This document shows, piece after piece, positions 11,632 to 56,778 of a DNA stretch of 64,000 nucleotides. The notes below the pieces were generated by a model that did not search any database, was not told where the DNA came from, and saw only the letters and a program-made list of their open reading frames with translations. A program made the translations under genes and the position numbers. The number at the start of each line of letters is the position of its first letter. Positions within the stretch are counted from its first letter, which is position 1. Origin of the DNA: Blepharisma stoltei ATCC 30299 (taxonomy: Eukaryota; Protista; Ciliophora); contig CBFDEM010000004.1 of assembly GCA_965603825.1 (NCBI GenBank), positions 868,001 through 932,000 of the forward strand. Direction: 5' to 3'.

Positions 11632-14600
11632 ATGACATTTTTTGGTCACCTGAGAGCTCTGTGCTTCAAAAACTGGCTGATTTGGAAAAGAGAATGAGTT
11701 GGGTCTGCTTGTGAAATTTTCTTTCCAGTATTTATCATGCTTTTCATGCTTTTATTGAGATATTCTCTTCCAGCAGAGCATAAGCCAGCAAAATCTCATC
11801 TAGATGATGGACAGATCATAGCTCCATCATGAAGTATGAATGAGTCCCTCTATTTTAACAAAAACTTGACTAAATCAGATGATACATGGCCATTTGCATG
11901 ATGCCAAGTAAATATTCAGTATCATTTCACATGGGGAATTATAGGGAATAAAACTTCTCCAGGTCTTAGCAAATATTTAACAGAACAAATAGGTAGCTAT
12001 TTTCCTTATACAGATTATAAGGGTCCAATGTATTTTGATACCACAGACGATATGGAAGATTATGTCACAGATTCAGACTATGACGATAAAGGGCGTGAAA
12101 AAATATGTTTCGCTGTAGACTTAAGCAAACAGAAAGATGATAACCACAAGGTCTATTTACGGTTTAATCTCACAGATATATTGCCAGACGAACAGACTGT
12201 ATACGGAAAATGATACCTTATTTTTTTGACAAGTCTTATACCGCCTGTAAATAAATTCCAAAAAGAAGTAAAACTCGAACACCAGCACAATTTTATATAC
12301 AGCGGCTTCTTTTCTATCCAAAACATGATTTACAACTACTATCTCACCAATAAAACTGAAAACCCAGACGCCTACCTCCAATTCGGATTCGTCCCAATGT
12401 ATCAGCAAAAATTCGTAAAAGACAATTTCATGATCGGGTTCGCCATGACCCTCGGGTTTTTTATGTTTATTACCTCGTTAGTGCCTGTTTCGAGGCTAAT
12501 TAATAAGATTACAATAGAAAAAGAAACAAAAGTCAAAGAAGCTATGAAAATGATGGGCTTAAATGACGCGCCTTATTGATTATCGTGGTATATTATGTAT
12601 ATGCTTATATATACAGTCATAAGTGGCTTACTTACTCTTATTGGCTGGGATATTTTTTCTGGCTCCCAAGCGATAGTTTTCTTGATTTTGCTTTTGTATG
12701 GGACGTCTTGTATAGCGTTTAGCAGCTTGATTAGCTCATTTTTTTCAAAAGCGAAGACTGGGATTTTAGTAGGCGTTTTGGCTTATTTTGCGTCATATTT
12801 TACGATTTTTGCTGTGACTGATACAACGCCAGCGTCAACGAAAAATGGGCTGTCGATTTTTAACACAATCGCGATGACACAAGGGTTTTATGTGTTGCTT
12901 AGCTTGAAAGGAAACCAAATTGATTCGACTATATCAAATCTTGACATTGAGTATGAATATTACAAGGTAGAAACCTGCATTATTATGCTATTTGTCGATA
13001 CAATTTTATATTCACTTTTAGCATTTTATTTTGGTAAAATTGTCCCTTCTCAGTATGGTGTAAGCTTGCCTTGGTATTTTCCTTTTACAAAGTCCTTTTG
13101 GCTAGGCAGGACAAGCAATGACAATAAATTAGATGAAAAAGCTAAAGAATTTATAAATGATGAAGAAGAAAAAAGACGTGAAGAAATGAGACAAAATAAA
13201 AATATAGAAGATCCAGACCCATTGCTGCTTAAACAGATAGAAGCTAATCAAGCTATGACTGTGAGAGGGCTGAGAAAACACTTTGGTGATAAAATCGCTG
13301 TAGATGGACTTGATCTTGACATATTTAGAAACCAAATTTTTGCATTGCTAGGACATAATGGTGCAGGGAAGACGACTACATTGTCAATGCTGACTGGACT
13401 ATTAAAGCCAACTGGAGGCAATATGACTGTTGATGGGCTTGACTTTAGGACTGATATGCCAGAAATAAGAAAGCGCCTTGGTGTATGTCCGCAGCATGAC
13501 GTTTTATTTAAAAATCTGACTGTTTATGAGCACTTATACATGTTTTGCAGATTTAAAGGCCTCACAGACTCCCAAGCAATAAATTCTAATATCGATGAAA
13601 TTCTGAAAGAAATAAATTTAGAAGACAAAAAATTCGTAAGGTCAGAAAACTTGTCAGGTGGCCAAAAACGAAAATTGTCATTATCAATAGCCTTGATAGG
13701 CGGATCGTCTATAGTAATGCTTGATGAGCCTACGTCAGGGATGGATTTGACAGCAAGAAGAAGGGTTTGGGATATGCTGAGAAATGACAAGCATGGAAGA
13801 ATTATTATTCTGACGACGCATTATATGGAAGAAGCTGATATTTTGGCTGATAGGATTGCAATTATGTCAGAAGGGAAGCTGCATTGCTTAGGATCTCCTT
13901 TGTTTCTTAAGAATAGGTTTGGAGTTGGGTATAATTTGACGATAGTTAAACAGATATCAGCAAGTGGAAAAGAATATTCTCAAGCTATAACAGATTTAGT
14001 AAAAAAATACATCCCTAAAGCAGAAACTTTATCTGATGTCTCCGCTGAATGCACATACCAAATCCCTCTATCAGAATCTGTTTATTTTAGTAGCTTTTTC
14101 AAAGAACTTGATAGACAGATGGCTAATCTTAAAATTGAAGCATATGGAATATCTGTTACTACACTAGAAGAAGTGTTCTTAAGAGTAGCTAGAGGAGATA
14201 ACGATTTTTCACCTGAAAAAGTCAGAACTGCAAGCTTAGAGCATGAAGACAAATTCATCCAAAAAGAAGATGATACTGCCACGCTAGGGGAAGCAGAAGA
14301 GATGGTATTCGAAAACAAAAGAGCAAAAACCTTTAATATCGCAAAAGACCATGACAAAGGCATGCTATTTATGTCTCACTTTTTAGCGCTGACACAAAAA
14401 CGAATTATTTATTCTTGGAGAGATTACAAAGGGTTTATTTTAGAAATTCTTTTGCCTATTTTATGCGTCATATTTGGGCTAGCCTTACTGACACAGTTTA
14501 GTATTTTGAATAATCAAAAATCATGAAAAGAAGACCTCAATAAATTTGATAAGCCTCAAAAAGTATTTTATAATCCCCAGCCTTATCTAAACCCATCAGC

Positions 14601-16973
14601 TGCAGGAGCTTCCGACATCAAATTCATTATGAACAGAGCAGTTGACAATACAAATGGCCGAATTAAACTAACAGAGTATCAAGGATCATTAGAAGATTTT
14701 GATTATAACATCTATAAACAAAGGACAAACAACCCATTTCGGCTTGGCTCCTACTATTTTTATGAAGCCGACCCAGTAAAGCACGCTTACAGTGTTGTTA
14801 TTTTCCATAACACAACAGCTTTGCAAGGTGCCCCTACATTTGCTGCCACAATCGGCCAAGCATTTTTACAAAACATCTATAATGACGATAATTTCAAAAT
14901 TCCTATTTACAACTACCCATTACCGCTCTCCCACAAGCAGCAAAACCTAGCTAGGAACGCTGGGACATTTTACGTTTCTATGATTTTTGCCATCGGAGTT
15001 TCCTTTATCCCTACAGGACTTATCACTTTTATAGTAAAAGAGCGTGAAAACAATATAAAACATCAGCATTTGGTAAGCGGGGTCTCAATCCCTGCATATT
15101 GGCTTTCTTCTTATGCGTGGGATTTATCTAAATTTATGATCCCTGGTATAATTTCAGTATTAATGATCAAAGCTTTTGGCTTAAAAAGCCTCGTAGAGTC
15201 TGATGACGTATATGGGGCGACATGAGGCTTATTCCTTCTCTATGGAGTTGCTATATGTCCATTTACTTATGCTTGCAGTTTTGTATATAAAAGCTACTCC
15301 ATCGCTCAATTTTTTACCTTTATTTACCACCTCATCACAGGGGCAATTTTTGCTACTTTAACTTGGACGCTACGCATTATATCTGAGACAACGAGAGACA
15401 TTTCTGACGTCTTAGAATGGCCTTTCCGCATTTTTTCACCCACTTTTTGTTTTTCTTTTGGAATTATGAATATTTCTAATAGAGAAGCTTATCAGTCAGC
15501 TTATAAAGAATCTAATATAAGAGGTCCATTAGACTGACAGATCGCTGGAGCTGACATTTGTTTTTTATGTTTACATGCAGTGGTAAGCTTGATTATGATT
15601 TTTGTAATAGAATGGGCAAGCACTGTTCAATGGTTCAGAAAAATAGGCTCTGCAAGAGATCCAGGAGAAAATGAATATAAACAAGATGATGACGTAGAAA
15701 GGGTTAAGAAAGAAGCGGCCGAGACAGACGCAAATAGTGTCGCTGTAAAGGTGGCAGGGCTGAGAAAAGTATATGGAAACTTTTTTAATAAAACACAAGT
15801 AAAAATAGCTATCCAAGAAATTTCTTTTGTGGTGCCTTTTCAGGAGTGTTTTGCGTTATTAGGAGTTAATGGGGCTGGAAAAACTAGCACGTTTAGGATT
15901 TTGACTGGGGAGTATGGACCAACTAAAGGTGAAGCTTATATTAATGCGTATAATGTCATCACACATTTATCAGAAGCTAGGTATAATATAGGGTATTGCC
16001 CTCAATTTGACGCTTTAACTGATCTACTTACCCCTACAGAGCATTTAATTTTATATGCAAAAATCAAAGGGATCCCTAAAGATCTAATCAAATATTTTGT
16101 AGAAAAACAGCTAAAAGATATGAACCTTGAAAAATACGCCAAAGTCAGGGCAGGAATCTTAGTGGCGGGAACAAGCGAAAACTCTCAGTTGCAGTAGCCT
16201 GCATAGGGAACCCTCCTGTCGTATTTTTAGACGAGCCAAGCGCGGGTATGGACCCAGAAGCACGCAAAAATATGTGGGGTGTTATAAATAATATAAAAAA
16301 ACAAAACGTCAGCATTATATTAACCACCCACTCTATGGACGAAGCAGAAGCTCTCTGCAATAACATCGGAATAATGGTAAACGGCCGTCTAAGATGCTAT
16401 GGGACAGCTACCCACATAAAAAATAAATTCAGCAGTGGCTATGAATTTTTCTTAAAAGTCAGGTACCCACGAGAAGAAGAAATTAATGAATTTATCAATA
16501 AATTAAGGACAAGGTATTTAGAAGACGTTATTGGTCAAGAAGAAGTCATAAATGCTATGGAAATTCTGGATTGTGGAGACATGTACCCAGAAATTTCTAA
16601 GGAAGGGACAGGATCACATTTGAAAGACGAAATGAATGAGTCAGGGAAATTAGGAATAAATAATCTGGTAGAGTGGATTATTGTAGAAAGATATGGACAA
16701 GCTATATATAGGTGGCTTGTAGATGAATTTGTGGATATTACGCTGATAGAGCATTATGGGACTTATTTTAAGTACAGACTGGAAAAGCAAAGTAAAGGAA
16801 TTGGAGATATTTTTGGGAGAATTGAAGATGCCAAAGAAGATTTGTATGTGAGTGAGTACTCGTTGAGCCAAACTACATTAGAACAAATATTCAATATGTT
16901 TGCTACAGAAGGAGAGATGGATATGACGATGTCTAATCAAAGATTAAGCAGAAAAATACACCCTAAGGAATAA
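11632..16973 (+). CDS. Full-size ABC transporter, subfamily A; 8 in-frame TGA=Trp; apparent 1-nt deletion frameshift at about 16155
   Basis: Start MTFFGHLRALCFKNWLIWKRE(W); EKETKVKEAMKMMGL..PY(W)LSW; NBD1 GHNGAGKTT, LSGGQKRKL, LDEPTSG; NBD2 GVNGAGKTS, LSGGNKRKL, LDEPSAG; C-terminal SQTTLEQIF. TGA at 11695, 11830, 11899, 12211, 12577, 14524, 15223, 15535. Confidence 0.92.
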
Positions 16974-18850: not shown

Positions 18851-20251
18851 TTAAATTTTATTGATACTTACTATAAAAGTATCCAGCGATCCAAGATTTG
18901 ACTCTTTCTTCAAAAAGCACCCATTAACCAAATTCAAAGCAGCTACTCCCGCAAATGCATAATAAGGGTACATAGGATTCATCTGATGTAGTGTTAGCAG
19001 GACAAAAGGTGACGAAATAGCTGCTATATTCATAAACGTAAAACACAACGAATACCCTGTCGTCCTAACACTAGTCGAATATAACTCATTTGTATAAGGG
19101 ACGATCACATCACTATTCACCATCCCACATATCTGTAACCCCATCACAAATGAGTAATAAAGTGTATTTGTCCACTTAAAAGCACATAATAATGAAGTCC
19201 CCAAGTGGAATACACTCACAAGAACTATTGTATTTTTTCTCCCAAATTTGTCTTGCTCTATCAAAAACATTGGAATTAGGGAAAGCGGGGACTGTATTAC
19301 GCTCATAATTGCTAAATTTGTAAGGACATCTCCATCAGATGAGTCACTTCCGAGGGTTCTTGGCAAAATAAACACGCAGCCATAGTATAAAAACCCAATA
19401 GCCCACCACAAGAAAAATCCTTGTAGTGTTATTCTTAAATAGTCTCCTCCAAACACCAATCCAAGCCTATCTAAATGGTTTTCAGCTTCACTTTTTTCTA
19501 TAAGTTTGACGGCTTCGATTTCTTCTACAGTGATTCTTCTGGCGTTATTTATTCTCGCGATTTTATTCAAAATCTTCACACACTTGTCGTGCTGATCGTT
19601 CATGGCCAGCCACCTTGGACTTTCGTCCAATAGGAAAACTAGGAAAATTGTACTGAAAAAAGCTGGCCAAGCTGCAAGTAGTAAAAGTTCTCGCCAATAG
19701 AGAGGATCGAGGTTTGGAACTAAAGCAAGACCAAGGAGAATAACCATCGTGGTTCCTACTTGGTAAAGCATTTGTCCAGCTAATACGGATAGTCCTCTAG
19801 AATTTTCTATGCCAGTCTCCACAATCAGGGTGGTGCCAATTGGGACTAAAACACCGAGACTTATGGACAAAAAGAGCCTTGTGCATACAAAAGTCCAGAT
19901 ATCTGGCATAAAAGCAGAGGTTACGGCAAAAATGCAGTAGGAAAGGGAGGAAAAGACCATGCATTTTCGTCTGCCAAAGGCATTGCCTAAAGGTCCTGCT
20001 ATGAGAGTTCCAATGGCTGTGCCAAGAAATAGGATTCCGCCCATGAATTCGACTACTTCGAGGCTTAGGTTTCATTCTTTTTGGAGAACTGAGGACATCA
20101 ATGTGACGATGAGAAGTTCAGCTCCTTCAGCCATTAAGAAAGCTCCACAAAGGCAGAGGACCATTAGTTGATACCGGCCAAAGCCAATTCGAGACAGAAT
20201 TCTATCAATACTCGAGTTTGGATGGCTAAATATTGCTTCTTCTATATCCAT
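18851..20251 (-). CDS. Major facilitator superfamily transporter, SV2/SVOP-like; TGA=Trp at 20072-20074
   Basis: True start MDIEEAIF..IGFGRYQL..AEGAELL..QKE(W)NLS; motif A GNAFGRRK; LDESPRWL; ELYSTSVRTTG. Confidence 0.9.
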
Positions 20252-31225: not shown

Positions 31226-31519
31226 TATTCTTTTGCGCTTATAAATGGCATTTTGAAGTAAATTTAAATAATTGGTAGAGAAATGAAACTGAAAGCTGAA
31301 ATTGAATAGTCAATTTTTTGCTTTGTAATTATTTAGCAAGGCAATAGGTGCTTTAAGCAGCCATTACATTTTAAATAGCAATTTGCATTCATTAAGCTTT
31401 ATTTATAGATATTTGCATTTGATTTTGATAATTATTTGGAAATATTAATAACTTTATTTATGATTTTGTAAAATACATGATTTTCATATAATATAGTTGC
31501 GACCTATATCATAATAAAA

Positions 31520-33862
31520 ATGGTATTACTTATTCTGTCATTTTGCTTAGTATCATTTGCCCTTGCAGAACCAAACCCTGACAGAGTAGAATACCAGTAC
31601 ATCGATCTAAACTCTCCAGTCACCGAAATAAAATTCTGCGGCGCTCAAGACGAAGTCATGCTTCTTCTCACCACTGAAAATTCTGTATATCGCTCTGAAA
31701 ACAAAGGCTTTTCATGGAAGCCGCTTTCCCCAATTCTAGAAAAAGAAGGCAAAAAGACAGGATCAACAGTCGGTAAGGTAACCCAAATAATCATAAATCC
31801 AGCAGACAAGCAAGTCGTGGTAATGTTAGGAAGCACAGGCCTTAACTGATTTTCAGAAGATTGTGGCAAAACAATAAAAGCTTTAAACTACGGACGACCA
31901 ATGGAAGAATATCACTTTCATCCTACAGAAAGAGACTGAGGATTAGCAGCGTCATGGTCTAAATGCTCAGATTTCGTTGATCAGCCCTGCAAAAAATATA
32001 GAGCTGTTTATCTGACAAAAGATTTAGGAGAAACTTGGACAAAAGTTGTGGATTATGTCGTGCAATTTTCATGGGCATATGAAAATTTAGCAAAATATAT
32101 CAGAAAAAACATCCCAAAAGAAAGAATTTATGTCACAAGAAGTTTGGAGGAAGGGGACCAAAAGGTGGCAGGATGGAGCTATAATGTTGATATGATAAAA
32201 AGTGATGATTTTTTCCTGACCTCGTCAATTTTAGTCCCACATGGGAATAAGTTTTTACTTGCTGACAGATACATACTAGTAGCTCAATCTATTGAAGAAG
32301 GATCCCAAGATGTCCAGCTGCAGATTTCTAACGAAAAAAATATAGAGAAGTTCTATAAAGCAGATTTGCCTATTAAAAGAATTTCTGAGCACAGCTATAC
32401 TTTATTAGACACAAGTGAAGGGTCGATTTTTCTCAATGTAAACCATTATGGCCCAGGCTCTAGATATGGAAACATCTACGAATCTGACGTCACAGGCAGA
32501 AAATTCGCAGTCTCTCTCCTCCACAACGTGAGAGATGCAAAAGGATACTGCGATTTTGACAAAATTTATGGACTAGAAGGAATTTATATAGCCAATACCT
32601 ATGACCGCGAAAAAACTAACGAAGAATTTGACGCTTCTACCACAAAAAAGAAAAAAGTTATCGCAGATTTAGACCAAAGCTACAAGAAAACAGTCATTAC
32701 ATTCGACAAAGGAGGACTTTGGAAGCCTCTAACCCCTCCGGAAAAGGACTCTAATGGTAAGCGTGTTCTCTGCAAAGACGAAGACTGTTCCCTTCATTTG
32801 CATTCTATTACTTCTCAAAAATTCGGTCCTGCTTATTCCTCAGAAAATGCTGTCGGAATTATCATAGGTGTTGGAAATGTCGGAAAATATTTATCCAATA
32901 AGCCTGACGAGCTTAATACCTATTTGTCAAGAGATGGAGGACTAACCTGGACTGAAATTAAAAAAGGGTCATATATTTATGAAATCGGCGACCATGGTGC
33001 TATTATAGTAATGGCTGATGACCAAAAAGCCACAGATAAGGTCTATTTCTCTTGGAATGAAGGACTTACTTGGGACTCAGTCAAATTTACTGACACTCCT
33101 ATAGAAATTGACAATATTATTATTGAGCCCAAAGCGACGTCTCAAAATTTCATTATATACGGCCAAATAGGAGAAAAAGGAGCCAGCGTTGCCATTGATT
33201 TTTCTTCACTTCATGAGCCACAATGCAAAGGTGCTGATAAGCCAGGAGAAGGCAGCAGTGACTATGAACTGTGGAGTCCTAATGATGGGAGGGCTGGGAA
33301 TGAATGCTTGCTAGGCAGAAAGGTAGAATATGTCAGGAGAAAAAGAGAAAGTGAATGCTTTAATGGAGAACAGTTTGAAAGAGGCACGTTTAAGTATAAC
33401 TGTGAGTGCACTAAGGCTGATTATGAGTGCGATTTAGGATTTTTCAGCGAAAATGAAGGGCCATGCAAGAAAATTGAAGGATTTATTGATGAAGAAAAAT
33501 GCCAGGATGGGGATTTGTATTATGAAGTTTCAAGAGGATACAGAAAAGTCGCTGGAGATACCTGTGTGTACGGGGTCAGTGAAGATTTAGACCCATTTAC
33601 ATTTGAATGTGACACAAATGCTATCAGCACGACTGGGATTATCATAATCCTCGTCCTTATAGCAATCATAATTGCCTTGCTTTATGTGCGGTTTTCAGAT
33701 TTTATCTGCAAAAAATGGACTGAATTCAAAGGTCTAGAAGTTTTTGACAAGGCTGGGTACTTCAGCGACCTCAGCAAAGCTCCTGAAGGTATGGAAGAAG
33801 AGCTTCCTTCCATAGTAGCTGACACTTTTGACGAAGAATCCCAATTTAATTCTAAATCTTAA
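31520..33862 (+). CDS. VPS10: Sortilin / VPS10-domain sorting receptor; TGA=Trp at 31847 and 31937
   Basis: Signal peptide, Asp-box repeats (SENKGFSW, N(W)FSEDCGKT, TKDLGETW, TFDKGGLW, SRDGGLTW, SWNEGLTW), 10CC module (CLLGRK..CFNG..CECTKADYECD), TM and acidic tail. Confidence 0.93.
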
Positions 33863-46281: not shown

Positions 46282-46590
46282 TCCTGATAACTAATCTGAT
46301 TTTGAGGGCGATAATTAAGAAATTTTTTATTTATTTATAGAGTCTAGGGCAAACAAAATATTATGTTTGTGGGAAGTCAAGCTAGATTCTATATAATGCA
46401 GTAAATAGTAATTTAAGGCAAGATTTAAAGATTCTCTTTTATGATAAAAATGCATTTAACAAAGATTTATAAAAATTCAACATTCCCGGCCATACCCTAT
46501 TAATAGGGTGAGCTTCAAACTGCCGAATTGCTAAAAAAATAAGTAAAAGAACAAATATTTTGTGATATGTTATTTTATAACTTAACAGCG

Positions 46591-46596
46591 AAAAAA
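46591..46596 (-). terminator. RNA polymerase III oligo-T terminator (equivalents at 47386-47390 and 48569-48574)
   Basis: T5-T6 run one base after the discriminator of each tRNA copy. Confidence 0.85.
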
Positions 46597-46597
46597 G

Positions 46598-46670
46598 TGA
46601 ACCCAGAGCGACTTGAACGCCCAACCTGCGGATTTGGAGTCCGTTGCACTACCAGTTGTGCTATGGGTCC
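46598..46670 (-). tRNA. trnW: tRNA-Trp(CCA), copy 1, 4-bp anticodon stem
   Basis: 73 nt GGACCCA TA GCAC AACTGGTA GTGC A ACGGA CTCCAAA TCCGC AGGTT GGGCG TTCAAGT CGCTC TGGGTTC A; full cloverleaf; followed by T6. Confidence 0.96.
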
Positions 46671-47391
46671 TGCTTAAACAATAACCTCAATACCACTATT
46701 TATATTACTGATTCCTAAATATTGTGCGCTTTATCAGCCCATAAGTCTTCAATTAATCTCTTCTGTACTCCTATTTAAATTTTTTTGCTTTTACTTGAAT
46801 TTCTAGATAACTCTAAATCAACGGTTTTTAAAAAACTTTCTAATTTGTCTTGTGTTGCAAATTTATTGCTTTCTGTCTGTTTTTTGCAACTATAAAATAG
46901 TGCCTTCATCTTTGAAGTAGTTGCTTAGTTTGGGAAGGCTAAAAGATTAATAGCCTTAAAGATGGATATCAAATTTATATACTGGAATTAAATAAGCCTA
47001 AATTTCAAGAATCAAGATTAGGCTATTCTCAAAAAATTAATTGTTTTTTAATTTCACTAGCTATAATTATAGTTTAGTTTAAAATTAAATTTTAGAAGAC
47101 TAATAAGTTTTAATCATAGCATAGCAGTCGCTGCATGAAAAATGGCTTAATGTCGCTTTTCTCTATGCAAAATTTATATGTTTTTCTTACCTTTTTAAAT
47201 TTGGAATTTTTCTAGAAACCTTAATAAGCAATAAAATTATTTTTTTGAAAGATTTATTGCAGGATTCTTGCAATTTTTATAAAAATTAAGATGAAAAGAC
47301 GTAATTTTGATTGGAAAAATAGTTCCGGTAACATTTAACTGGAAATTTGGTCAAATTCATCAGCCATATTCTTTTTGAAATTCATAAAAAG

Positions 47392-47464
47392 TGAACCCAG
47401 AGCGACTTGAACGCCCAACCTGCGGATTTGGAGTCCGTTGCACTACCAGTTGTGCTATGGGTCC
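47392..47464 (-). tRNA. trnW: tRNA-Trp(CCA), copy 2, identical
   Basis: Identical to copy 1; followed by T5. Confidence 0.96.
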
Positions 47465-47491
47465 TGCTTAGTTTATATTATCTTATTTCTC

Positions 47492-47509
47492 TTAAATATA
47501 CTTTTTACA
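47492..47509 (-). promoter_or_regulatory. Conserved upstream TATA-like element of tRNA copy 2 (TGTAAAAAGTATATTTAA, -45 to -28)
   Basis: Same 18-mer at the same offset upstream of copy 3 (48676-48693); copy 1 has TAATATAAAT ending at -28. Confidence 0.6.
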
Positions 47510-48575
47510 TCACATTTTCTTTAAAAAATTAATTTTTATTAAAAAGTAACTTATATGAGTTATTAGCTTTTAGCAGCTATGCATTAAGAAACCTCGGACA
47601 CGCAACTTCCAGCTGCAAAAATCTGAAAGGGTAAATATCCCTTTAAAAACTTTATAAGTGATATTTATGAAAGGTCATCGATTCAGTATATTCTTGATAA
47701 ATGCTTTTCATTCCTCTTTTGACAAGACACATTTGCGCTCTCAGAATAATATATGGATTAATTATAATTCCAATATTTAAGTAGTTTTTGATTATTTTTT
47801 TGTGTAAAATTTCAGAATTGTAAAAATGACGGTTTTCGATTTTTAATTTAATAACCCGATTTCTGCTATAATTTATAACTCTAAATTTAATTATAATTTA
47901 ATCTCAAGCTTATAATTGGATAAGTTTTTAGTTTTTTATCTATAATTTGTGTAATTTAAATTTTGGTTTTAAAGATATACTAAATTCTATGAAATATACG
48001 ACTATCTATGAAAATAGTTTAGTATTGCTTTCCTCTATGCAAAGGTTTCTATTTTCTTATCTTATTTAAACTTGAATTTTTCTGAGAAAAATCCTTATAA
48101 TAATAATAATAATAAATTATGCTTTATCGCACCCGAGGTGCCTTTACTTTTATTTCTCATAATTAAAATCAATAAGTCTTTTGCAACATCATCAACGTAG
48201 CGACAACAACATCAACGATTCCAGGAAAAAACACCAGCATTACTGCAGCATTAGATCCAGCTACAACTCTAGCATCAACTCAATTGGCAATTTAGGTATC
48301 TTCAAGGCTCACTAAAACTTTATTTTCTTCAGTTTGCTTCAATTTTTATCATTTTTTAACATTTTGGATCATCATGTGCTGTCTCCATGCCATCGCCCAT
48401 TGCATCATCTTCCATCTTCGCTTCAACTCCTGCACTCCATGGATTCAGCACCGAAAAGACTACCGCTGACGCAAAATCTCCTCTCATACTGCAACTCCTT
48501 TCAGAATTGACAGGATAAGCACTTCCAAGAATAGTATAATTTTTAATAGTTAATATTCTTTTAAATTTAAAAAAG

Positions 48576-48648
48576 TGAACCCAGAGCGACTTGAACGCCC
48601 AACCTGCGGATTTGGAGTCCGTTGCACTACCAGTTGTGCTATGGGTCC
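48576..48648 (-). tRNA. trnW: tRNA-Trp(CCA), copy 3, identical
   Basis: Identical to copy 1; followed by T6. Confidence 0.96.
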
Positions 48649-48733
48649 TGCTTAATTTAAATGTTCATATCCCTATTAAATATACTTTTTACAGTATGGG
48701 ATATTCAGAAAATTAAGTTTCAATTAAAGACTA

Positions 48734-49381
48734 TTAGTTACTAGCGTTTCTGACAGCTGTGCATGTAGAAATCTCTGGACATACGGTTTTCAGGCTGCAA
48801 GTCTTTGGAAGGTCAAAAATCCCACTAGGAACACTATAAGTGATTTTATGGAAATCCATTAAGTCGTTTGGTTCTTGATAAATGCCTAGCATGACTCTGC
48901 TTGAAGGAGATGCCACTGCTGTCTCAAAGTAGAAATTATTTTGAAGTCCCTGCTTGTTCCACTTGTAAGCTTGAACTCCCATATGAACCTCAGTGTCAAT
49001 AAAAGTGGCATTATCAAGCCATGTAGGCTTAAGCATCCCACATCCTTGAGCAGCATTGCAGCAGAAGCAGCAAGTACCGTCATTAGGGTAATACAAGAAT
49101 CTGTTTCCTCCAACAACAATGTGGCTGCATGGAGCATTAGTTAAGACTCTGAACCCAACAAGGCCGCAATATCTGTCAAATCTACCATTTGCTCTGTCAA
49201 TACGGTACATTTGGTTGGTCCAGTCATAGTAATAAGTACCAGTGGTAGTTTGGTTGCCAAATTCTGGGTAATAGAGAGTTTCGTTGAAGGTTTGTGTAAA
49301 AACATTAGGCCATAAAGGATACTGAGGAGTGGCTTCTAAAGAAGCACTGGCGAGTCCTAAAGTAATTAACAGGATCCACAT
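48734..49381 (-). CDS. Secreted Cys-rich protein, ependymin-related (EPDR)-like
   Basis: Signal peptide, PLWPNVF, GTYYYDW..RIDR, CCFCC, LKPTWL, FDLPKTC; family assignment by recall only. Confidence 0.7.
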   Translation of the reverse strand: MWILLITLGLASASLEATPQYPLWPNVFTQTFNETLYYPEFGNQTTTGTYYYDWTNQMYRIDRANGRFDRYCGLVGFRVLTNAPCSHIVVGGNRFLYYPNDGTCCFCCNAAQGCGMLKPTWLDNATFIDTEVHMGVQAYKWNKQGLQNNFYFETAVASPSSRVMLGIYQEPNDLMDFHKITYSVPSGIFDLPKTCSLKTVCPEISTCTAVRNASN

Positions 49382-50130: not shown

Positions 50131-50345
50131 ATAAATAGATTTCATATAAAATACATATTTTCGCCTCATTTACAGCCTAAAATCCAAATTTATAACCAAT
50201 TTTAAGGTATAGTCATTTTAATAAATCTTATTTTTATTCAAATATTTTTAAAATTTAATAAAAATACAAAAAACTTTAAAAATTCCCAAAATTCAATATT
50301 ATTTAAGAAAATATCTTTCTTGATAACTTGTGACGTTATAAAAAA

Positions 50346-51734
50346 ATGGAAGAAGTCAGCAGAGAAGGTGAAGCAACCATAACTCTCCCAGACGGCACCA
50401 CCGCCAAACTTCCATTCCTCCGAGGCACTCATGGTCCACCAGTTATTGACATCCGCACACTATTCAACCAATTAGGCTGCCTTTCTCTTGACCCTGGGTT
50501 CACATCCACCTCAAGCTGCTTTTCCGCAATTACTTATATTGATGGCGAAAAAGGAGAGCTCTGGTATCGAGGATACGCAATTCAAGACTTGGCAAATAAT
50601 TGCACGTTTCTTGAAGTCTGCTATCTCCTTTTGTATGGAGAATTACCCAGTGTCGTAGAACTCGAAAGGTTTGAAAATGCAGTCAAAAATGAGATGCTGA
50701 TCCATATGAAACTTATTGATTTTTATAGCAGTTTCCAGCAAGGAGCGCATCCTATGGCAATTATGGTAGGCGTTGTAGGCGCTTTATCAGCTTTTATGCA
50801 TGAAGACATTGACGTCATGGTCGCTGAGCAGCGTGAAGCAGCTGCTATCCGAATTTTAGCAAAATTCCCTATGATGGCTGCTGTCGCCTATAGAACTGCC
50901 TATGGTTTACCGATTGTTTTTCCTAAGAAAAAGTTCGGGTACACCGAAAATTTCTTGTACATGATGTTTTCTGACCCTATGGCTGACGATTTTACAGTCG
51001 ACCCAGTCGTAGTCAACGCTTTAGAAAAAATCTTTATCCTTCACGCAGACCATGAGCAAAATGCATCCACTTCGACAGTCAGAATTGCAGGAAGCTCCCT
51101 TGCTAACCCTTATGCTTGTGTAGCAGCTGGCATTGCTAGTCTATGGGGTCCTATGCATGGCGGTGCAAATGAAGCTGTCCTTGCTATGCTTGATGAAATA
51201 AAATCAAGAGAAAATGTCGACACTTTTATAGCAAAAGCTAAAAATCCTAATGATTCCTTTAGACTTATGGGCTTTGGACATAGAGTTTATAAGAATTTTG
51301 ACCCAAGAAACCAAATAATGCAGGATATCGCTCATGAAATTTTGACCCATCTGCAATGCAATCAAAAAAATATATTAGAATTAGCCCAGGAGCTGGAAAA
51401 TAAAGCGCTAAATGATGATTATTTTATTAAGCGAAAATTGTACCCAAATGTTGATTTTTATTCAGGAATTGTCCTGGAGGCTATTGGGATACCAAGGGAT
51501 ATGTTTACTGTCATTTTTGCATTGGCAAGGGTTATTGGGTGGATGTCACAGTGGCATGAAATGATGTCAGAGTCTGTCAAAAAGATAGGAAGGCCTAGAC
51601 AGCTGTATGTGGGAGCACAAAAGAGAAATGTGCAGCCTAGAGAAATGAGGGAAGGGAGAGAAAGCATTTCTCCAGAAATTATAAATTCACCAAGAAAGGT
51701 CTGGTCACCTACTAAAGAAAAAGCAGCAAACTAA
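50346..51734 (+). CDS. gltA: Citrate synthase, bacterial type II (GltA-like)
   Basis: DPGFTSTSSCFSAITYIDGEKGELWYRGY, ILHADHEQNASTSTVR, LWGPMHGGANEA, RLMGFGHRVYKNFDPR, LYPNVDFYSG, IGRPRQLY. Confidence 0.93.
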   Translation: MEEVSREGEATITLPDGTTAKLPFLRGTHGPPVIDIRTLFNQLGCLSLDPGFTSTSSCFSAITYIDGEKGELWYRGYAIQDLANNCTFLEVCYLLLYGELPSVVELERFENAVKNEMLIHMKLIDFYSSFQQGAHPMAIMVGVVGALSAFMHEDIDVMVAEQREAAAIRILAKFPMMAAVAYRTAYGLPIVFPKKKFGYTENFLYMMFSDPMADDFTVDPVVVNALEKIFILHADHEQNASTSTVRIAGSSLANPYACVAAGIASLWGPMHGGANEAVLAMLDEIKSRENVDTFIAKAKNPNDSFRLMGFGHRVYKNFDPRNQIMQDIAHEILTHLQCNQKNILELAQELENKALNDDYFIKRKLYPNVDFYSGIVLEAIGIPRDMFTVIFALARVIGWMSQWHEMMSESVKKIGRPRQLYVGAQKRNVQPREMREGRESISPEIINSPRKVWSPTKEKAAN

Positions 51735-53301: not shown

Positions 53302-56300
53302 CTAACCCTGAGAAACCTGCCTATAAGATGATAAATTTTCTGCAGGAATAACTGACGATAAATTTTTAGCTTTTAACGCATAATTCATTAGGATTTCAGG
53401 CTTCGACGGATGGAAAATTCTTCTGAAAAAATGAATCCCACCATCAATACTCGCAACCAGGCTAAGCGTCGTAAAAATACTTAAATAAAAATAAGGAGAC
53501 TCAATAATCTGAAAAATCGATAAATAGTCTGGCAGCTCCGTTAAACTATCATATACAAGAATAAACCCAAAATACAGCAGCAAGCTTAGTATACATATAG
53601 AAAAAACGCTATAAACAGTCCAATGTCTCGTATGTAGCGACAGCTTCAAATTTACAATTAAAATCACACAGGAAAAAGAAGTAATAGAAAATGATCACAA
53701 ATCGTGGTTTAAGCCATCTTCAGTCAACATTCCATACTCAGCTGCATAAAAAGGGATAAAATAAACAATAAATGAATGGAAAAGTCCGTTGCCAATTCAT
53801 ATAGAAAAATTATAAGGTGTAAAAATCTCATTTAATCGTCCTGTATTGTAACATTTTGGGACCAAATCCCTAATTTTATTATGATGCGTCGACCTTAATG
53901 GGTTATCTTCAGTACTATTCATACTGGCGATGGACTGCACTTCATTTCGCCTAGGAATGATAATATCAATTTCTAATAAGGCTTTTACAATTAAAGGTAA
54001 AGCTGTAAAAACCATATTGTAAAACGTTATATATCAGTCGTCATAAACTGTTTGGCCACTATAAGCACAATAAAATGCAAAAAAAAACTGAGGGATTGTA
54101 AAGACTAAATTTTTGTAAAAAAAATACATAATCATTTCGCTTTGGCGGAGATAGTTAAACCTGCCATGGATTAACAATAATTCTCATAGAAATTTAAATT
54201 CACCTATAGCATAGTCGCTGGCTTGTACAGATTGCATGCCTTCTTCGCCATATAAACCAATCCCTACATGTGCTTCTAAGATCATAGCTACATCATTGGC
54301 TCCATCTCCTATAGCTAAAGTAATATATCCGCAATGGTCTTTCATTAATTTTACGACCTCTTGTTTCTGCCCAGGAGTTACTCTACAACAAATGACTGTT
54401 TTGCACATCGACGAAATTCTTAAGAACATTTTTTGGATTTTTGTCGCTTTTTGTATAGAGTCAGCTGTGCCTGACAATTCCGGATATTTTGATACTTTTT
54501 CAGGGTTTTTGCAGTCAAATAGGATAATTTCAAGGGAATCTCCTTGTATTATTAGCGCCGCAGGTTTTCCTGATTTTATTGACTCTTTAAATTTTTTTTT
54601 AATTTCTACCATTTTTCCATAACAAATATCTAAAACCCCAGACGAACATCTTTCTATTGTAGTATTCGCGTCAATTAACGAGCAGGTTTTTCCAATATTT
54701 TCTGCAGTTTCCAGTTTATCCCCAGTCAGCATCCACACACTAATCCCAGCACCCAGCAAATCATTAATAGTTTTAGGCACATCTTCTTGTAAAGAATCCT
54801 CTACAGCTGTGCATCCTAATAAAAAAATATTTTTTTCTATTTCATCAGCGACTTGGCTAATTTTTTGGTTCCTCCCCTCAATTGAAGTACTGGCTACGTC
54901 ATATTTTGCTTTCCAAGCGCTGAACTCATTTTCCTCAATAATCCGAAAACCGAGCATAAGAGTCCTTAACCCTCTTTCTGCAAAGGTCTGTAAATTCGCA
55001 GAAACTGCTTCAAATATTTCTTTGCTGCTGCTTCCTGACAGCTTTGTTTTAATCATATCATCAGCACCTTTAATAAATAAAAAGATTTTATTTGTAGATA
55101 AATCCCTTACAATAATGGAATTTCTTTTTCTGTCTGAGTCAAATTCAAGGGTGCAGATTTTTTCGTATTTTTCTATAGAAAAATCAGTCCCGACTTGTAG
55201 ATCGACGATTCCGTCCTTTATTTTTGTGTATTTAAAGCCAATTCGGCTAGCACTGTCAACTAAGGCAATTTCGTCTGGGCTTTGTCCGACATAGGAAATC
55301 GCTCCAGAGTCATTATTTTCGATAAGACATTCATGGCAGAGAGAAAGACACCTTAAAAAAAATTCATTAATTTGCTGCTGGTTTTGCAGCTCAAAATTTT
55401 GGGTAATTTTTATAGGTTTTATAGCAATCGGAACCTTGGAAAAAAAAGTGTCGTGCTCAATCACTTTGGTGTCAAAGGAAAATGCAATTTCTTTATTAGA
55501 AAAGCTAGGTTTTTGGACGTATTCTAAATTCATAAGGCTTCTATTATCCCCATACATTTTGGTCCCAATTGTACAAAATTTAAATTCCATTCTATTACAA
55601 GTCAAAGTCCCAGTTTTATCAGAAAAAATATGCTGGACCATGCCAAGCTCTTCATTTAAGCTAAATGAAGAGACCTTACATGGCCGATCCCTGAGTTTGC
55701 TATACATTTCACTGTCTTTGCTCATAAAATAGCCTTGTACAACCTTAAGAATTTCAAGAGAAACTATAAGGGAAATAGGCAACATCGTGTTTAATAATAA
55801 AAAATACGTAAAATACCCTAAAAACCCTTGCATGTTTGCAGAATAATCTAAACCGTGGAGATATTCATGCTTTTCCCAGTGTTTACTGGTTCATAGTCCT
55901 TCTAAAATTGCAGTAGCAAGGCACATTAGTGATTGAATCCCAATGATATAAATAATGTATCGATTTACTTTTCTTTCTACTTGGCTCTGCTTAAATCTCC
56001 TCCCCATCAAATTTTGCCTCAATTTTGTATCATTTCCTGTGTAAACAGCAACCCCAATCGCTCAGCTTGTGTTCCTCAAAAAAGCGCCTCCAAGTAAAAC
56101 TTGGCTTTTATCCAATGGATACCTTTTATTTTCGTACTCAATAGCGCCGCTGAATTGATAAATCCGAGGATTTGGAGTGTCACATTCAAGCATGCTAAAA
56201 ACCCGAATAATCCCTGTATCTTTAACGATTTCTGAGGTGGGTCCAAAAGCTTGTCGCTGTTTAAGGGCTTTTTCGCCATCTAGAGTAGACGTTTCAATAT

Positions 56301-56778
56301 AAGCGATACCATTTTCGCTTGAATTTGAAAGCATGACTAAATCGCAGGGGAAAGACTCGTCTTTTAGCACCTTGACTAGATCTCCAACCTGTACATCTTT
56401 AAAAGTAGCATCTTCAAATGAACCTTTATTATAGACAAGGGTTTTAGTAGAATTTGTTTCCTGGTCTGATTTATAGCGTAAATAATCTTCTACACCTTCT
56501 CTGATCATACTAACAGCTAATACAAACACTAATGGAGCTATAGCACTAAAAGCATTTAAAGGAGAAATCTGAGGAATTGACTGAAGAATTGCTGTAACTA
56601 GAAAGTAAATGTTCGCAATACGCTTGAATTGGTCAAATAAACTTATTGGCAGGAACGTAAAAACGTTGTATTTTGTGGTGCTTACGTAATTTGTGGGGTA
56701 TTTATAAGTGTCATTTATTTCAGCTCCGTTGATATAAAGGATACGTTTCCTTTCTTCTTCTATTTCACTTTTGGACAT
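53302..56778 (-). CDS. P4-type ATPase (phospholipid flippase), about 1158 aa; TGA=Trp at 56062, 55891, 54184, 54034, 53797, 53695
   Basis: TTKYN, LDGEKALK, LRNTS(W)AIGVAVYTGNDTK, PISL, DKTGTLT, SPDEIALV, MLTGDK, CCRVTPGQK, IGDGANDV. Confidence 0.95.

Follow-up and report, generated by a model that had tools for sequence, protein, structure and literature searches.

An unusual way for a genetic code to change is for a stop codon to acquire an amino acid although no tRNA has the matching anticodon. The closest described cases are Blastocrithidia nonstop and Condylostoma magnum (Kachale et al. 2023, as presented in the papers that cite it), in which in-frame UGA is read as tryptophan (Trp), tRNA-Trp has a CCA anticodon and an unpaired position at the top of its anticodon stem, and neither a cytosolic tRNA-Trp(UCA) nor anticodon editing is reported in those accounts. 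With these tRNAs, stem length alone is described there as having strongly changed UGA readthrough in reporter systems. A bacterial precedent is provided by anticodon-stem mutants of the Escherichia coli su7 suppressor (Schultz and Yarus, as related by Swart et al. 2023), in which disruption of the top 27:43 pair favors C:A mispairing at codon position 3. Here we analyze a 64-kb stretch of the macronuclear genome of the ciliate Blepharisma stoltei ATCC 30299 (Contig_12:868001-932000, assembly contig C4; hereafter the window), which carries three identical genes for a tRNA-Trp(CCA) whose anticodon stem likewise lacks its top pair.

Blepharisma shares with both organisms the CCA anticodon, the unpaired top position, the in-frame UGA codons and the lack of both a detected cytosolic tRNA-Trp(UCA) and appreciable anticodon editing, but as far as the citing papers describe them the systems differ in several respects. 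The mismatch is C:U in Blastocrithidia and A:C in Blepharisma. In Blastocrithidia and Condylostoma, UGA or the other stop codons have an ambiguous meaning or the whole set of three has been reassigned, whereas in Blepharisma UGA apparently means only Trp, with UAA and UAG serving simply as stops. Among cases of this kind Blepharisma is the cleanest: UGA is apparently always Trp, termination uses the ordinary codons UAA and UAG, and the genome is complete. Reporter assays speak directly for the Blastocrithidia and Condylostoma tRNAs and would extend to the Blepharisma tRNA by analogy; the su7 variants are laboratory mutants of a bacterial suppressor, and Blepharisma represents a natural change of the code.

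The original prediction, made from the sequence of the window, could not say whether such a tRNA had been reported for this species. It has: Swart et al. (2023; bioRxiv 10.1101/2023.10.09.561518, cited as eLife 2024 RP93502) described the same three genes at the same Contig_12 coordinates (Table 1), with the same sequence, and drew the same conclusion, and a 2026 paper in Nucleic Acids Research, citing that work as eLife 2024 RP93502, treats Blepharisma as an established case. The finding is thus real, well supported and already known, and since the point was published for these very genes the present analysis is a confirmation rather than a discovery. What it adds is a shared upstream leader and TATA-like motif, the relic of a duplicated flank, and an independent, pattern-based check for UCA-anticodon tRNAs.

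Structure of the tRNA-Trp(CCA) genes

Both ARAGORN and a search of the window with Rfam family RF00005 placed three Trp(cca) genes on the minus strand, within limits of 46597/8-46670, 47391/2-47464 and 48575/6-48648, and each copy scored 62 bits (E 5e-11) against a gathering score of 29. The three are identical over their 73 nucleotides. Numbering of copy 1 put the anticodon at 46637-46635, the discriminator A73 at 46598, and A27 and C43 at 46644 and 46628, respectively, the positions given in the original prediction. Because no Watson-Crick pair is possible between A27 and C43, only four of the usual five anticodon-stem pairs form (C28-G42, G29-C41, G30-C40 and A31-U39), and 27:43 was the single non-standard pair in the Rfam alignment, with the acceptor, D and T stems intact. 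The ViennaRNA minimum-energy fold of the 73-nucleotide RNA (-24.7 kcal/mol) is a cloverleaf whose anticodon stem likewise has four pairs. Either of two single substitutions made in silico closed the fifth pair and gave a fold more stable than the native one, A27G at -28.5 kcal/mol and C43U at -26.3 kcal/mol.

One alternative was that the genes are duplicates in decay or products of misassembly, with the mismatch a sign of damage, given that they lie in a tandemly duplicated region with decaying flanks. However, BLAST of the genome with the 73-nucleotide gene returned six copies, three in the window and one each on contigs C14, C44 and C46, that are 100% identical to one another; all six retain intact stems, terminators and leader, and none of the degenerate stems, divergent copies or missing terminators of a pseudogene or tRNA-derived repeat was found. 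The same structure occurs in two other species of the genus (B. japonicum and B. undulans, published ARAGORN output), which, together with the six identical copies, excludes chance or sequencing error. No other tRNA-Trp was found in the genome, and ~173,000 tRNA-seq reads map to these genes (Swart et al. 2023). We therefore rejected decay or artefact, to which we assign a negligible probability, in agreement with the original argument that intact stems, terminators and a mismatch common to every copy speak against error or decay.

UGA is a tryptophan codon

The B. stoltei ATCC 30299 genome paper describes a 41-Mbp macronuclear assembly, 66% A+T, of 64 telomere-to-telomere contigs, and gives UGA as tryptophan. 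The window conforms to this, as had been proposed from its sequence: long open frames are broken by TGA and not by TAA or TAG, UAA and UAG remain stops, and the neighboring genes require UGA to be read as Trp. A P4-ATPase gene with six in-frame TGA codons (Table 1) served as the test case. The 49-residue piece that precedes one of these codons matches Pfam profile PF16212 at positions 17-64, and the piece that follows matches positions 66-116; because the flanking pieces skip one profile position, the TGA corresponds to exactly one residue, at position 65. In the paralogues the same column is TGG (Trp) in one and TGA in two, all within a YDDWY motif. Similarly, the conserved Trp of an NIEQ-W-K motif near the N-terminus of the eRF1 paralogues is encoded by TGG in one and by TGA in two.

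Genome-wide, the coding sequences contain 44,087 TGA and 78,535 TGG codons (Swart et al. 2023). As about one third of Trp codons are UGA, six genes for one near-cognate tRNA must decode UGA efficiently if they serve both codons.

Search for an alternative decoder

ARAGORN found no UCA-anticodon tRNA in the 64-kb window, as the original prediction had stated, and we extended the question to the whole genome (41,464,486 bases in 64 contigs). The BLAST search with the 73-nucleotide gene uncovered no diverged tRNA-Trp. A whole-genome RF00005 search scored 63 of 2298 candidates and so gave no census; it was replaced by pattern scans, in which an anticodon had to be followed by a canonical T-loop at tRNA spacing with a short variable loop, and then by ARAGORN. 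Given these requirements, the scans would miss unusual RNAs.

The CCA-anticodon pattern had 67 matches, compared with 51 in a reversed-pattern control. Forty-two of them were checked by ARAGORN (30 as loci and 12 picked by eye), yielding the six Trp genes, a tRNA-Gly(UCC) and two ambiguously read, aberrant tRNA-like genes (L142 and L150, Table 1); the remaining 25 comprised three repeats of the tRNA-Gly sequence, two known Trp copies and, for the rest, A/T-rich strings. No tRNA-Trp with a 5-bp anticodon stem was found in the genome by these scans and the 42 ARAGORN checks. For the UCA anticodon there were 99 matches against 152 in the reversed-pattern control, and therefore no enrichment, and none of the 99, all of which were examined, was a tRNA with a UCA anticodon. 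The sole UCA tRNA found in the genome was tRNA-Sec (C30:34444-34529).

The published tRNAscan-SE table (Swart et al. 2023), which lists 169 tRNAs, agrees: it has six Trp tRNAs with CCA, at coordinates identical to ours, and TCA only for SeC. Those authors likewise obtained no UGA-cognate nuclear tRNA other than tRNA-Sec with tRNAscan-SE and ARAGORN. Their YAMAT-seq data place 172,929 unique reads on the six identical genes and show the tRNA to be expressed and CCA-tailed, with C34-to-U below 0.1%, that is, no appreciable editing.

The most serious rival explanation, yet a minor one, arises from the same data set. Swart et al. (2023) describe a tRNA-like RNA of B. stoltei, encoded on Contig_39 and with paralogues on Contig_1, that is expressed, bears a CCA tail and may have a UCA anticodon; its existence weighs to some degree against tRNA-Trp(CCA) as the decoder. 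Were it the main decoder of UGA, perhaps charged by the second cytosolic paralogue of tryptophanyl-tRNA synthetase (TrpRS), the 4-bp stem would be incidental or auxiliary. The RNA is abundant, with ~7800x YAMAT-seq coverage and a non-templated CCA tail; it is 93.8% conserved among Blepharisma species compared with ~61% in its flanks, and is absent from Stentor; and among the ciliates examined by Swart et al. (2023) only Blepharisma has two cytosolic TrpRS genes. On the other hand, the RNA is unlike tRNA-Trp, is recognized by neither tRNAscan-SE nor ARAGORN (Swart et al. 2023), and had no match in our UCA-anticodon scan, which required a canonical T-loop. Moreover, no comparable RNA is reported for Condylostoma and Loxodes, both of which decode UGA as Trp using a 4-bp tRNA-Trp. 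We consider a principal role for this RNA improbable.

Distribution of the 4-bp stem, and eRF1

Swart et al. (2023) found a 4-bp-stem tRNA-Trp(CCA) in three Blepharisma species (B. stoltei, B. japonicum and B. undulans) and 4-bp stems in Condylostoma and Loxodes as well. In two heterotrichs that use the standard code, Stentor coeruleus and Fabrea salina, they found only stems of five pairs. The major tRNA-Trp(CCA) of the karyorelict Loxodes magnus also has A27 and C43, with a variable loop and T-loop near-identical to those of Blepharisma (source data of Swart et al.), although, unlike in Blepharisma, it is present in more than 100 copies and UGA is Trp or stop depending on context (Swart et al. 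2023). The shared A27:C43 could reflect a single loss of the pair in the common ancestor of Heterotrichea and Karyorelictea, a speculative origin that we judge possible though on balance unlikely, and which we did not find stated in Swart et al. (2023). If it were true, the UGA-reading tRNA-Trp would predate the split of the classes, and Stentor and Fabrea would secondarily have restored the pair and returned UGA to a stop.

An altered eRF1, with Ala or Gly replacing Ser at the position of yeast Ser67, had been proposed as the accompanying trait. We identified three eRF1 paralogues in the genome and, on C33, one Dom34/Pelota homologue. At the position equivalent to Ser67, six residues after the NIKS motif, two of the three paralogues have Ala (NIKSRIVRQA on C11 and SIKSRVVRQA on C37) and the third has Ser (SIKSRNMRQS on C28); SIKS replaces NIKS in two of the three. 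These are the three divergent paralogues of Swart et al. (2023), who report Ala67 in the paralogue with the highest transcription and Ser67 in a weakly transcribed one. The expected substitution is therefore present in two paralogues, but its diagnostic value did not hold up: given that Ala67 is also found in standard-code heterotrichs and is absent in several ciliates that read UGA as Trp (Swart et al. 2023), it is neither necessary nor sufficient for UGA reassignment.

These data bear on a second alternative, that UGA is read mainly as a result of tRNA modification (at C34, A37 or elsewhere) or of changes in the ribosome or eRF1, with A27:C43 contributing little. Blepharisma eRF1 recognizes UGA weakly in vitro (Swart et al. 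2023), two of its three paralogues have Ala67, the tRNA-Trp reads carry clear modification signals at non-anticodon positions (Swart et al. 2023), and 4-bp stems also occur without reassignment. Ala67 in standard-code heterotrichs, however, argues against eRF1 as the cause, and among heterotrichs and karyorelicts a 4-bp stem goes together with UGA=Trp, Stentor and Fabrea having five pairs (Swart et al. 2023). Further, stem length by itself strongly altered readthrough with the Blastocrithidia and Condylostoma tRNAs, as the citing papers describe it, and the same effect was seen in su7 genetics. Such a modification- or eRF1-based explanation seems to us to have little chance of being correct.

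A probable near-cognate decoder of UGG and UGA

What is observed is that the six nuclear tRNA-Trp(CCA) genes are intact and identical, that the scans contain no alternative decoder, and that UGA is a sense codon. We consider it highly probable that these genes encode near-cognate decoders of both UGA and UGG that act through their 4-bp anticodon stem, and the proposal that the cluster supplies such a tRNA is supported by the stem itself, by the lack of a UCA tRNA-Trp in the scans and by the use of UGA for Trp; the causal step, from the missing 27:43 pair to UGA reading in B. stoltei, is drawn by analogy. The unpaired 27:43 position would loosen the anticodon arm sufficiently for C34 to mispair with the A in the third position of UGA, so that one tRNA species would insert Trp at both UGG, its cognate codon, and UGA. 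At UGA the tRNA would compete with an eRF1 that recognizes this codon weakly, while eRF1 would continue to terminate at UAA and UAG.

Several points weigh against this reading, in addition to the tRNA-like RNA considered above. The causal step rests on the reporter assays of the Blastocrithidia and Condylostoma tRNAs and on su7 genetics, and we found no readthrough or decoding assay of a Blepharisma tRNA in the literature. Furthermore, a 4-bp stem alone does not suffice: the tRNA-Trp of Paramecium biaurelia has one, yet UGA is a stop in that species (Swart et al. 2023), and a B. stoltei tRNA-Ser(CGA) also has four pairs, with U27:U43 at the top (published tRNAscan-SE structure file). Finally, in metagenomic sequences some tRNA-Trp(CCA) genes have G27:A43 and adjoin genes terminated by TGA, a weak counter-example given that stacking may persist in a G:A pair.

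Apart from tRNA-Trp, only tRNA-Ser(CGA) (Contig_8:468433-468513, on C63; Contig_20:787064-787144, on C13) has a 4-bp stem among the canonical tRNAs in parts one and two of the six-part published structure file. The remaining canonical tRNAs in these two parts have five anticodon-stem pairs, tRNA-Ser(UGA) among them with A27-U43. No recoding would follow from tRNA-Ser(CGA), because looser reading by its C34 reaches only UCA, which is also a Ser codon.

Flanking sequences and origin of the cluster

Comparison of the flanks of all six genomic loci revealed features common to every copy. The RNA polymerase III terminator, a C followed by five or six T residues, begins directly after A73, and the leader AAGCA occupies positions -5 to -1. 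An A/T-rich, TATA-like motif (TATAAAT, TTTAAAT or TATTTAA) lies ~25-35 nucleotides upstream and may act as a promoter element.

The sequence pattern of the spacers indicates that the three-gene cluster arose through tandem duplication. The flank of copy 2 is 69% identical to that of copy 3 at 48649-48898, which includes the 3' end of a cysteine-rich protein gene on the minus strand (48734-49381), and the copy 2 flank looks like a relic of a tandem duplication that carried this 3' end along. In the macronuclear assembly of B. undulans, three tRNA-Trp genes lie 1365 and 804 nucleotides apart on a single contig (at 119654, 121019 and 121823; published ARAGORN output); given this three-copy cluster of similar spacing, the tandem array is older than the divergence of the two species.

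Twelve sequencing runs from the same organism matched the window or part of it, none of them recorded as RNA and four guessed to be RNA. Taken as assembled (Logan) contigs, the poly(A)-type runs cover only the genes that flank the tRNAs, and a small run from 2024 placed no contig on the window. Within the spacer between copies 2 and 3, assembled contigs of runs guessed to be RNA cover 48176-48528 deeply, with 7-9 base differences and a 12-nucleotide gap; these discrepancies make a transcribed paralogue elsewhere the probable source, and no convincing open frame was found in 48176-48528 of the window.

Other genes, tRNA-like sequences and metagenomic relatives

The features discussed here are listed in Table 1 together with other protein-coding genes of the window.

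Table 1. Coordinates of the tRNA-Trp(CCA) genes, their flanks, other genes of the window and tRNA-like sequences elsewhere in the genome. Positions are those of the window unless a contig is given.
Feature	Position	Strand	Evidence and remarks
tRNA-Trp(CCA) copy 1, 73 nt	46598..46670	-	ARAGORN, Rfam RF00005, position numbering; Contig_12.trna5, 914598-914670, in the published tRNAscan-SE table
tRNA-Trp(CCA) copy 2, identical to copy 1	47392..47464	-	ARAGORN, Rfam, genome BLAST; Contig_12.trna4, 915392-915464
tRNA-Trp(CCA) copy 3, identical to copy 1	48576..48648	-	ARAGORN, Rfam, genome BLAST; Contig_12.trna3, 916576-916648
RNA polymerase III terminator of copy 1 (C then T6 right after A73)	46590..46597	-	Flank inspection; equivalents T5 in copy 2 and T6 in copy 3
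Upstream flank of copy 1 with leader and TATA-like motif	46671..46710	-	Six-locus flank comparison
Copy 2 flank, similar to copy 3 flank	47465..47717		blastn of spacers between the tRNA genes; direct-repeat family D1
P4-ATPase (flippase)	53302..56778	-	Pfam PF16212, paralogue alignment
ABCA-type ABC transporter, 8 in-frame TGA	11632-16197	+	Pfam
Sortilin/VPS10-domain protein	31472-33862	+	Pfam
Citrate synthase	50334-51734	+	Pfam
MFS sugar-transporter-like protein	18851-20251	-	Pfam
tRNA-like L115:89-163	C42:21582-21656		Loop with UUCAGG, 6-bp stem
tRNA-like L142:68-141	C37:127654-127725		10-nt loop with UCCAA
tRNA-like L150:89-160	C33:56559-56630		8-nt loop

The tRNA-like sequences of Table 1 belong to a family in which the acceptor stem starts with TCAGA(G/A) and a normal T arm is combined with an aberrant anticodon arm; the published tRNAscan list holds further, low-scoring members.

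A metagenome scan for relatives of the tRNA-Trp returned mostly bacterial tRNA-Trp and a few eukaryote-type genes with a mismatched 27:43. As none of the matches proved to be a close relative, they are silent on heterotrich evolution. Two of them (L208, Ga0058701_10000109; L241, Ga0209372_1000131) encode a tRNA-Trp(CCA) with G27:A43 beside STE20/MAP4K-like kinase genes that have no in-frame TGA and whose complete frames end in TGA, so that, judged by these sequences, they seem to come from eukaryotes that use the standard code and whose top pair is not of the Watson-Crick type. A third (L177, Ga0310786_10228201; 2137 bp, 26% G+C) carries a eukaryote-type tRNA-Trp(CCA) with U27:C43 and a 4-bp stem beside a TrpRS gene, which, having four TGG and no TGA in 447 codons, is compatible with either reading of UGA.

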